Assembly: GCA_965285935.1 (NCBI GenBank)
Contig: OZ260662.1
Span: 23,002,001 to 23,066,000, forward strand
Direction of reading: 5' to 3'
DNA: 64,000 bases
Origin: Ophelia neglecta
Lineage: Eukaryota
Under the pieces are notes generated by a model. That model was not told the origin of the DNA. It was given only the letters and a program-made list of their open reading frames with translations, and made no database searches. A program made the translations under genes and the position numbers. Every line of letters starts with the position of its first letter. The first letter of the stretch is position 1. Below, piece after piece: positions 9,101 to 12,100 of this stretch.

Positions 9101-12100
9101 AAGCCTGTAGGCTTTTAACAATTTGCTTTCAAGTTCTTTTTTCAGAAGGCACAGTTTTGCAGCAAACCAAAAATTTCAAAATGCTACAAAATGATGACAT
9201 GTTCAGAAAGCCATGTAAACCCTCTCTCCTCTCCTCTCCCTTATGCATAATTTGGAATTTGAAGGCCATCAGTAAACAAATGAGAGGATTAGAAAGGAGC
9301 ATGATGCTGTTACAGGCAAAAAGCCCTGTTTTTAATTGACATTGACAAATTATCTGGTGTTTTATGTGTTTCAGAGTTTTTACCTTTCCCGCCACTGCCG
9401 AGCACTTTCTGTTTATGCTGATGTAGCTTTCTTCGCCTTGGTCGTGACAGGGCATACTTTAGGCTGGGCGGCTTATTGCTGTAGAAAACGGCAGAGTTCT
9501 TAGCCACCTTACCGCGATACAGGCTGCGTTTTCTGTCCAGGGACAAGAAGAGGTGGGAGGGCATGGCCACCCCGGGGGTGATTTTCCCATAACCGTTGTT
9601 TCCACGCTCAACTGTCCCCAATGCTTTATATCCTGTACTTTGGTCCCTACTGGCCGTACTTAGGTCCACATTTGTAGCACTATGGCCTAATTTCCTACCA
9701 TCATTATTTTTCAAGCTAGTAGTATTGTTCTGTGAACGTGTCTTCCCTGATTCTATGCTCTTGATGTCAAAAGAGCTGTGAGCCTTCTGCTTGCACAGCT
9801 TGTTCTCGTTTCTAGACAGGCCTTTTTCTTCAAGTGATACACTTTTACCAAAGCCAGTTTTCCCTTTGCGCCTAGGTCCTGGGCAACACGCTGATGTCCC
9901 TCCGCCTGCTTGGGCCACACTACATTTCTTGTATGGTGTGACACATTTTTGCTGTACAATTTGAGGAGGAATTAAAAGACCAGCTGAGTCATTGCTGTTC
10001 ATATCCATAATGTTGTCTTGATTTAAATCACATTTCTTAGTCAAATCTTTGTTGGATTCAATAATATTGTTTTTCATACAGTCTAGGGTGAGTTTAGCCA
10101 GTGATTGGTCCAAAGTTTGAGATGTAGGCCTTGATTGGCTGGCACTTGCACTTAACACATTATGTGATTGGCTGGCAGTGAGAGAGGAGCCAGCTCCCTC
10201 CACTCCTTGACTAATGGTGTAAAATGATTGGCTGCCAGCCAAAGAACCAGAGCTCAGAGTGTCTCTTTTGATGGCATATTTAGCCAATATAATCTCCGGT
10301 GTGAGAGGGTTCACTGGAGGAGCCTTTTCCTCCCTAGGGGGCGATGTTTTTGGCTCAGCTGGTTCCGTAGCCTCTGGAAATAATTTTGTAGCAATTAAAT
10401 CCCCAGGAAATGATACACTTGACTTCTTGCCTGGATCCTTTTTCCAGAATTTCAGTTTATATTTGCGTTTACTCCAATAGAACGGAGTTTTCGCCAGTTT
10501 TACGCCCTCCTCAGACGTAGCCTGAAGATCACTTTTCTCAGGCCTGTCTTGGGCAGGTTTAGCAGTTACACTTTTCCCTGGTTCCTTTTTTGTACATGTA
10601 TGCAGGTTGACATTGGAATGTGTTATACTGTCAGGAGAAGTGTCATTGAACTTGACATCACAGATCCCGGAATCACAGCTTGTCCTCTTTCTTTCCGTCA
10701 CCACATTACCTGCCGTGTCAGAAGACTTGTCTTCCGTTTTACCCTGTGTACTTTTGGCAGCCTTTTTGGCCCGCTTCTTTGCTTTATGTTGCTTCTTAAG
10801 TTTTTTACTGTTGAGGTGTTCGTTGTTGACGAGCAGCGAGCATTTGACTCGTAATCTTGGCACACGACACAGCCCTAGCATGTGTACAAGCTGGTGCCGA
10901 TTGTAGAAACAGCTGCAGGCAGGTCCATAGGTCCCTGTCGTGCACGCGTCGGACATACGGTCTAATGTGTCCATGGCCACAGATGGGGAGCCAAGTGCAT
11001 CATGGGATTGCCTGAGAGCTGTAATACCCATGGACTGATCGACAGTGTTTTTGCTCTGACTCCTTCCAGCCAGCATCCATGTTGATTGCATCATTTCCTG
11101 TGATGACTGCAGTGCCTTGTGGGAGGAGCTGAGGGTGTTCCTAAAGGGACCCAGGGTTTTCTGGGAGCTCCCCAAAGGATTGAGCACCGCATTGTTTCCA
11201 TTGGTATCCAGGCCTTCTACAGAACGGGCCGTCATCTCCGAGGTAATACTGAACAAGCCTAATTGAGAAGTCATCTTTTCTAATGCCTTCCAATCACTAT
11301 AATAGCCAAGAAAATTACCAATAATGCATCAGTAAATGAGAGATTTGCCGAATGCATCTGTGCCACTGATTGCAACCCTAGCCTGGGGTGCTAACAGCCC
11401 TACGTACCAGGGATGGCTACAGTCACAATAATGATATACAAGGGGTCCCAGTACACAGATGACAGGACTATCAGTGTCAATCACCTTGTCACAGACAACT
11501 CAAAAACATGATGGATTGGGGGCAGTTGTCACTGTAAGTGTGGCCTGAAAAAACAAGTACATGTGTGCAAGGTGTAAAACATATATCCTTCACAAGTAAG
11601 GAGGACGACAAACTCCAAGTCCAATTCCCTATCAAGTTACCCACGCACGGGTGTACTGAACTCTGTAATATCCATGTTAGTACCCAGCTCACAGCAGACA
11701 AGTATATCAACATATGACATGAAGTACATCAGTATTGTCACAAGTTATTCAACCAGTATTTGTCCACTTTGGTCGGCCAATTACTTCATTATTAGACCAA
11801 TTTTAAAACAATAGGCTCATTTTCCTGCCTAAATGCATTATCATTTGCATGTAGTTATAAAGTGAATTTCATTCCAGCTCGACAGATCGGCTCACAACAG
11901 TAATATAGTAATGACTGAATGGTTCCCGTTAGTTTGTAAAACAACCTGCGCCCTCCTGCATGGCTCTACGGTAACTTCCCAGTACTAGCTGACTTAGGTC
12001 CACAAACAATAAGCTGACAAGGACCTTTTTCAATCTCCAGTCATAATGGTAATATCACGTTTGGGCCCTGACAGCGCCTGACAGCCTGAGTTATTGCCTG

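Follow-up and report, generated by a model that had tools for sequence, protein, structure and literature searches.

Abl is the textbook example of an autoinhibited kinase: its SH3 domain, bound to the SH2-kinase linker, and its N-terminal cap (N-cap) together keep the enzyme off. The part of the clamp encoded by exon 2 (a2) is lost in the BCR-ABL fusions with a junction at exon 3 (a3), and SH3 is lost in v-Abl; to our knowledge, every known loss of the Abl clamp is pathological (v-Abl, BCR-ABL including its a3 variants, and SH3 deletions). Vertebrate ABL1 and ABL2 also occur as types 1a and 1b, with short alternative first exons that lie upstream of a2 and have their own promoters and phase-1 junctions. 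Here we describe a 654-codon open reading frame (ORF) from Ophelia neglecta, located in a 64,000-nucleotide stretch of DNA (assembly GCA_965285935.1, contig OZ260662.1, positions 23,002,001 to 23,066,000; hereafter the window), where it lies on the Abl strand within the intron that separates the equivalents of a2 and a3. From comparison with related loci, we place about even confidence in the reading that the part of this ORF from 11274 to 9384 is a lineage-restricted alternative first coding exon of Abl that joins a3. Slightly more tentatively, we propose that the previously undescribed exon family to which it belongs may give rise to a germline, evolutionarily maintained Abl isoform, in which a disordered region of 630 residues that includes a Cys/His-rich helical motif takes the place of the N-cap and of the first SH3 half. 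If true, this would be a natural counterpart of the architecture of a3-junction BCR-ABL and v-Abl, and some marine animals would deliberately make an unclamped Abl under a different N-terminal logic. Should the exon indeed join a3, its product would be the first germline, conserved isoform to dispense with the clamp.

The closest natural analogue of this arrangement is provided by the vertebrate 1a/1b exons, which likewise represent an alternative 5' coding exon within one Abl gene and have a phase-1 junction. They are, however, short, splice to a2 and go with a whole SH3 domain, whereas the new exon has 630 codons, is placed in the a2-a3 intron and has a3 as its only possible partner, half of SH3 being bypassed. 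With the BCR-ABL1 fusions e13a3, e14a3 and e1a3 and with v-Abl, it would share a foreign N-terminus set in frame at or beyond a3 and the lack of the cap and of the a2-encoded part. Those proteins are pathological products of somatic translocation or of retroviral capture, whereas the arrangement described here, in which we infer the join to a3, is germline and kept in two species under purifying selection; its N-terminal region, unlike the BCR-ABL1 and v-Abl partners, has neither a coiled coil nor any relation to Gag. Outside Abl, the short isoforms of Tks5 (PMC4178035) and the internal promoter of titin (PMC4720518) are also reported to combine an intronic start, a first exon of their own and the loss of an upstream domain, but their unique first exons are short whereas the new exon is larger than most whole proteins and is in itself the most constrained novelty. 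Same-strand nested genes resemble our locus in having a conserved ORF wholly inside a host intron, in a position kept across species. Yet nested genes need a terminal exon and a poly(A) site of their own, neither of which was found here, and the ORF ends in a conserved donor and not in a conserved stop. Literature searches returned nothing relevant on such an Abl isoform or nested gene.

On the Abl strand of the window the order of elements is a2 (last base 37377, then gtaaga), the ORF (11274-9384) and a3 (starting at 2503 after tttccag|, in phase 1). The a2-a3 intron, which splits SH3, is 35 kb long, with 26 kb between a2 and the ORF and 6.9 kb between the ORF and a3. The features referred to below are the following, with nonsynonymous (pN) and synonymous (pS) differences measured against the orthologous copy on a contig from another species (L002); vertical bars mark exon ends.

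37377..37559, minus strand: Abl exon-2 equivalent (a2), with the end of the cap, the ALYDF strand and the SH3 RT loop; phase-1 donor.
9384..11274, minus strand: predicted 5' coding exon, 630 codons plus the first base of a split Gly codon; the ortholog shares both ends.
11272..11274, minus strand: start codon in the context gaaaagATGA, with A at -3; first in-frame ATG, 18 codons past an in-frame stop.
10828..10989, minus strand: family signature block, residues 96-149, the most conserved part (80% nucleotide and 86% amino acid identity to L002).
9384..9552, minus strand: basic C-terminal block, residues 575-631, LFLSL.RKR...G| (pN 0.20, pS 0.89).
9511..9513, minus strand: first donor named in the original prediction, CGCG|GTAAGG; unconserved, inside conserved coding sequence.
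9379..9387, minus strand: phase-1 splice donor AAAG|GTAAAA, GT at 9383-9382, last exon base 9384; conserved.
9310..9383, minus strand: read-through tail of 23 codons plus stop, unrelated to the L002 tail (pN 0.65 vs pS 0.73).
2204..2503, minus strand: Abl exon-3 equivalent (a3), 300 nucleotides, second SH3 half and start of SH2; phase-1 acceptor, presumed splice partner.

The ORF listing of the window confirmed the long non-repetitive frame on the Abl strand that the original prediction had singled out, an ATG-to-TAA frame of 654 codons on the minus strand at 9310..11274. An open frame of this length is far beyond chance at 44% GC, and it is the only one of at least 180 amino acids in the 64 kb that lies off tandem repeats; the other ORFs of that size (23995-24930 on the plus strand and 46197-46757 on the minus strand) are due to minisatellites at 23422-24841 and 46194-46724, with units of 29, 33 and 18 nucleotides. 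The only repeats near the ORF are two intronic minisatellites situated between the new exon and a3, one at 6752-7305 with an 11-nucleotide unit (ACAGCCCACGG) repeated about 52 times and one at 7523-8489 with a 51-nucleotide unit repeated about 19 times. Both give spurious long ORFs on the minus strand, and the 51-nucleotide array is length-polymorphic, as contigs from two runs skip 7988-8426. Farther upstream in the same intron, a satellite array at 18200-22356 (4.1 kb, 166-nucleotide unit x 25, 97% matches, GC about 0.58) explains the GC peak in the composition profile of the window.

A protein search with the ORF found a single match in the 762 Mb assembly, and a profile built from six members of its family (see below) also hit exactly one place there. 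The ORF protein had no Pfam match at E values up to 1, a profile search of the PDB gave no match for the family, and a protein atlas search returned nothing above noise. No transposase, reverse-transcriptase or integrase domain was detected with Pfam in the ORF, and no terminal inverted repeats (TIR) or long terminal repeats (LTR) flank it. A transposable element (TE) or viral ORF was ruled out on these grounds (one copy in 762 Mb, no Pfam match, no TIR or LTR), and the check for a TE origin called for in the original prediction thus revealed no multi-copy or TE match.

The idea that the ORF is an orphan did not hold, since an ortholog with 44% identity occurs on the same strand of the same Abl a2-a3 intron in another species. 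This protein (P0001), the sole relative returned by the first word search, shows 40% identity over 81% of the query and is encoded on L002, an ENA assembly contig in which the Abl SH2, tyrosine-kinase and F-actin-binding exons lie directly downstream on the same strand. Counted from its first ATG, the P0001 ORF also has 654 codons; both copies begin with MTSQLGLF, and the nucleotide differences of L002 fall mostly at third codon positions. On the L002/L010 contig the ORF is preceded by the a2 equivalent at a distance of about 12 kb, on the same strand, and followed by a3 after only 1.8 kb. The a3 peptide of the window is 97% identical in amino acids to that of L002 (13462-13761), with the a3 acceptor in phase 1 in both. 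The order a2, ORF, a3 is therefore conserved in the two species while the spacing differs. L002 also carries, directly after the conserved N-terminus, a 40-residue Pro/Thr-rich insertion relative to the window (9745-9870). It begins at a donor-like GAG|GTGAGA and could be a small intron kept in the ORF call or a true insertion.

The codon alignment of the window with L002, in which pS is saturated (0.78) and the overall pN is 0.40, reveals a series of blocks with far lower pN: residues 1-13 (pN 0.10, pS 0.79), 96-149 (0.067), 196-211 (0.09), 273-290 (0.13), 324-350 (0.14) and the C-terminal 575-631 listed above. These values indicate that the ORF up to the 9384 donor is under purifying selection, whereas the 23 codons past the donor behave as neutral. 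The low-pN blocks and the single copy agree with the original prediction in marking a genuine coding exon under selection, neither a TE nor a chance ORF. Variation within the species could be followed over the region 5700-11699 in contigs of other haplotypes, assembled from the genomic DNA of three public runs of one sample. In the ORF we counted at least 8 synonymous and at least 12 nonsynonymous single-nucleotide polymorphisms, a pN/pS of 0.43 that is indicative only. Of the changes listed, 2 of the 8 synonymous but none of the 12 nonsynonymous ones lie in the conserved blocks, to which 28% of the residues belong. Among the variants listed, the only indel inside the ORF is of +3 nucleotides, and those in the flanks are of 1, 2, 4 and 5 nucleotides.

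Beyond this pair of orthologs, nine more distant relatives bring the family to 11 members. In a profile search without length limits against 1.84 billion representative proteins, the block at residues 96-149, which alone retrieves distant members, brought out four additional proteins, and a word search seeded with these proteins added four further ones; a scan of metagenome contigs with the family profile gave no match. Across searches of billions of predicted proteins, only these 11 sequences were found. None of them contains a Pfam domain and, on sequence grounds, they define a new protein family without a Pfam or PDB match. The core motif Y.PAC.CF...H.LGLC........C is invariant in the family, and all 11 members share a basic C-terminus ending in K(V/L)(L/I).G....G. 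At least two members come from a marine biofilm metagenome (PMC6355793). The genome that encodes another member, P0003 (ENA ERZ22147071, with Mb-scale contigs; plus-strand ORF at about 2,342,374-2,343,381 of contig ctg31467l), is rich in dispersed repeats (L004 17147-17883; L007 224-646; L091-L093), among them a 42-amino-acid ORF unit in 147-nucleotide tandem arrays on at least 24 contigs and an ORF of about 76 amino acids (VENFDEI..LS.TVK.IEAN).

The shared C-terminal Gly is where the coding sequence appears to end. DNA was available for nine loci, and in each of them this terminal Gly is encoded by GGT followed by a purine, which makes a phase-1 donor of the form G|GT(A/G):

Window: AAAG|GTAAAA
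L002: CAAG|GTAATT
L003: ATAG|GTAGGT
L004: ATAG|GTAAGG
L005: CCAG|GTAAAC
L008: CTCG|GTAAAA
L009: CCAG|GTACAT
L094 and L095: CCAG|GTACAT

Between L009 and L094, which are close relatives, the 72% nucleotide identity over the last 367 bases of the exon is gone directly after the GT. Because the G|GT(A/G) is kept in phase 1 in nine of nine loci and similarity ends there, the ORF is best regarded as a 5' coding exon and not as a complete single-exon gene, and the exon-intron boundary at 9384 is readable from comparative data alone. The two phase-1 donors described in the original prediction, CGCG|GTAAGG at 9513 and AAAG|GTAAAA at 9384, both exist, and either would reach the 2503 acceptor in frame, all three sites being in phase 1. 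Their fates differ, however. The 9384 donor has its phase and position kept in the nine loci and is in frame with a3 in both species in which the family is linked to Abl, whereas at the position of the 9513 donor L002 reads CACAAAGGGAAG, with no GT, and the residues that follow (KVAKNS...) are among the best conserved.

This pattern also bears on the possibility that the ORF is an independent single-exon gene running to the TAA at 9310, or else a domesticated or decayed transposon or viral ORF. The frame does stay open to 9310, and no known domain contradicts an orphan protein, but the 23 codons past the GT are unconserved and neutral, and the tails beyond the last Gly are unrelated among members, with lengths (1 to more than 60 codons in the family) that differ even between relatives that are 70% identical. 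GGT plus purine is fixed at the site in all loci with DNA and, as described above, the ORF is single-copy and devoid of transposase, reverse-transcriptase and integrase domains and of terminal repeats. The single-exon reading, which the original prediction had kept as its fallback and which these neutral codons of variable length disfavour, appears already largely refuted, and we consider this whole group of explanations very improbable. The tail at 9310..9383 is instead interpreted as the start of the intron and as noncoding.

At the other end of the exon, two ways of entering it have to be weighed. In every locus the first in-frame ATG is found 6-44 codons past an in-frame stop, with a purine at -3 in six loci; P0003 also begins with MTS, and other members start with MTS or MNS a few codons past an in-frame stop. 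The alternative is that the exon is a cassette of Abl, entered from the a2 donor at 11258 and left at 9384, which would add 625 residues to SH3 at the point where a2 and a3 meet; this version would keep the cap and both SH3 halves and could coexist with use as a first exon. The acceptor on which it depends in the original prediction (ttag|, exon start 11258) does exist. The resulting 1875 nucleotides are 3 x 625, with both ends in phase 1, and the octamer CAATTAGG, which includes a rare TTA Leu codon, is identical in L002. The cassette reading itself nevertheless found no positive support. Its polypyrimidine tract is poor (gatgacttctcaattag), whereas the ATG, the A at -3 and the MTSQLGLF start are conserved, and the five codons upstream of the 11258 acceptor encode the same protein in the window and in L002, with differences only at third positions. 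The MTS/MNS starts of the other members point in the same direction, and we judge a cassette exon improbable. Use as a first coding exon is favoured, since the conserved ATG, the purine at -3 and the conserved codons upstream of the acceptor indicate true initiation.

Past the donor of this first coding exon, the next conserved element on the same strand is Abl a3, in both species. Over the stretch from the donor to a3, sensitive blastn and tblastx comparisons of the window with L002 detected no further conserved segment. The same programs detected none between these donor-to-a3 intervals and the 17 kb downstream of L004, and neither did comparison with the shorter downstream pieces of L003, L008, L009 and L094. 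A 15-residue tblastx match at 8693-8649 was dismissed as weak, low-complexity chance similarity. Given that a3 is the next conserved element, that the phases match and that the same-strand nesting is conserved, splicing to a3 appears the most economical solution. In such a case, transcription would start from a putative promoter upstream of 11274, within the 35-kb a2-a3 intron, and translation from the conserved ATG at 11274, with the exon ending at the phase-1 donor AAAG|GTAAAA. The 9384 donor would then be spliced to the constitutive phase-1 acceptor of a3 at 2503, bypassing a2. The resulting product would lack the N-cap and the SH3 half encoded by a2 (the ALYDF strand and RT loop) and would begin instead with about 630 residues, mostly disordered, that include the conserved Cys/His-rich helical block and the basic C-terminal block of the exon; the second SH3 half, SH2, the kinase and the F-actin-binding tail would come after them. 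Such an isoform would be unable to form the clamp, and its control, if any, would be exerted through the new N-terminus.

Several observations weigh against a join to a3. Only three public runs contain the stretch, all from one sample and consisting of genomic DNA that covers intron and exon alike. Neither the 1.84 billion representatives nor the word searches yielded a protein in which the family is fused to Abl or to any other domain, although the word search is blind to proteins longer than about 1,150 amino acids and the representative library may hide isoforms. The 80 other Abl a3 loci fetched from metagenome contigs all lack the family exon, and 47 of them capture a2 and a3 with the whole intron between them (0-3.8 kb); the nearest of these other a3 loci are 88-91% identical and have less than 2.3 kb of upstream sequence each. 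Because of this absence, the exon is, over the loci compared, not a general Abl feature but one confined to the lineage that includes the window and L002. No Abl a3 exon was detected within 17 kb downstream of the distant member L004/L007, nor within about 10 kb downstream of P0004, which lies on a 42.6 kb contig of ERZ25070167; a 7-kb extension downstream along the 2.7 Mb contig that carries P0003 brought no Abl exon either. The family is linked to Abl in two of the two loci that have Abl on the contig, and the contigs other than these and those of L004/L007 and P0004 are shorter than 5 kb. The phases alone would agree by chance in one case out of three, and a private second exon could have been missed if it were very short and unconserved. 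It would also be unusual for selection to maintain a product that has half of an SH3 domain.

In the main rival reading, the 630-codon exon would instead open the coding sequence of an independent gene of several exons, nested in the Abl intron on the Abl strand. The conserved donor would be spliced to a private exon, either short or evolving fast, located between 9384 and 2503; the gene would have a poly(A) site of its own, and Abl would splice over the whole of it. Members found elsewhere without an Abl exon within 10-17 kb downstream, the 47 other Abl a2-a3 introns devoid of the family exon and the failure to find an Abl-fused protein in database searches all fit such a gene. So does the presence of two different members, P0007 and P0008, in one marine biofilm sample. 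Moreover, nested genes tend to stay nested, and conserved synteny is no proof of a shared transcript. Against it, a second conserved exon went undetected in the 1.8 kb of L002, the 6.9 kb of the window and the 17 kb past L004. In L002, the rest of the coding sequence, the 3' untranslated region and the poly(A) site would have to fit into 1.8 kb while sharing nothing with the window, in contrast with a first exon conserved to its last codon. A same-strand donor in a host intron would also face the strong constitutive a3 acceptor of matching phase, and a spliced product of up to 586 amino acids was not found by the word search either. All considered, we regard an independent nested gene as plausible but somewhat less likely than the join to a3; even so, it would encode a new protein family without a Pfam or PDB relative.

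Predictions for the protein itself are compatible with a long N-terminal region of the kind proposed for an Abl isoform. AlphaFold 2 (AF2), run with the family alignment, predicts a mostly disordered protein, with a mean predicted local distance difference test score (pLDDT) of 42.6 and 566 of 654 residues below 50, and such predicted disorder suits an N-terminal extension. The exceptions are a helix at residues 126-175 (pLDDT 63-87), which covers part of the signature block and the basic stretch that follows it, and a short helix at residues 326-332. We speculate that the longer helix may be amphipathic and either membrane-proximal or palmitoylated, or else may serve for docking. A strict zinc-binding module of the form CxC...H...H...C...C was rejected, as its first Cys is Thr in P0008 and P0009, its first His is Gln in P0007, and the isolated Cys/His block gave only a low-confidence AF2 fold (pLDDT 54). 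If the exon does give an Abl isoform, the questions raised would be how the kinase is restrained and whether the Y.PAC.CF...H.LGLC motif serves in membrane anchoring, metal binding or as a docking helix. Of the three basic clusters quoted in the original prediction, two (KLKFWKK and RPRRRK) are conserved and the 15-letter one is not. The likeness of KIYDF to ALYDF and the ...L.G...G| ending also prompted the idea that the exon is a diverged duplicate of a2, able to restore the first half of SH3. This candidate was discarded after hhalign comparison with a 17-sequence a2 profile, in which the match probabilities were 0.9% and 0.1% and the sole resemblance was that of KIYDF to ALYDF over 8 columns.

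The survey of other Abl loci provided some additional observations. In about nine of them (L039, L043, L058-L060, L068, L076, L077 and L080) a2 and a3 are contiguous, and the absence of an intron at the SH3-splitting site implies that it was lost or never gained in some lineages. Two others, L072 and L074 (Ga0065711_1055062 and Ga0181612_133878), carry a vertebrate-type ABL exon 2 (…ALYDFVASGDNTLSITKG), which is presumably not identical to the human one, and they are probably animal DNA within a metagenome; they were included in the scans of the 80 Abl loci and left out of later comparisons. Finally, a DEAH-type helicase gene (Helicase_C, HA2 and OB_NTP_bind domains) is located tail-to-tail just downstream of Abl in L002 (20735-21683).

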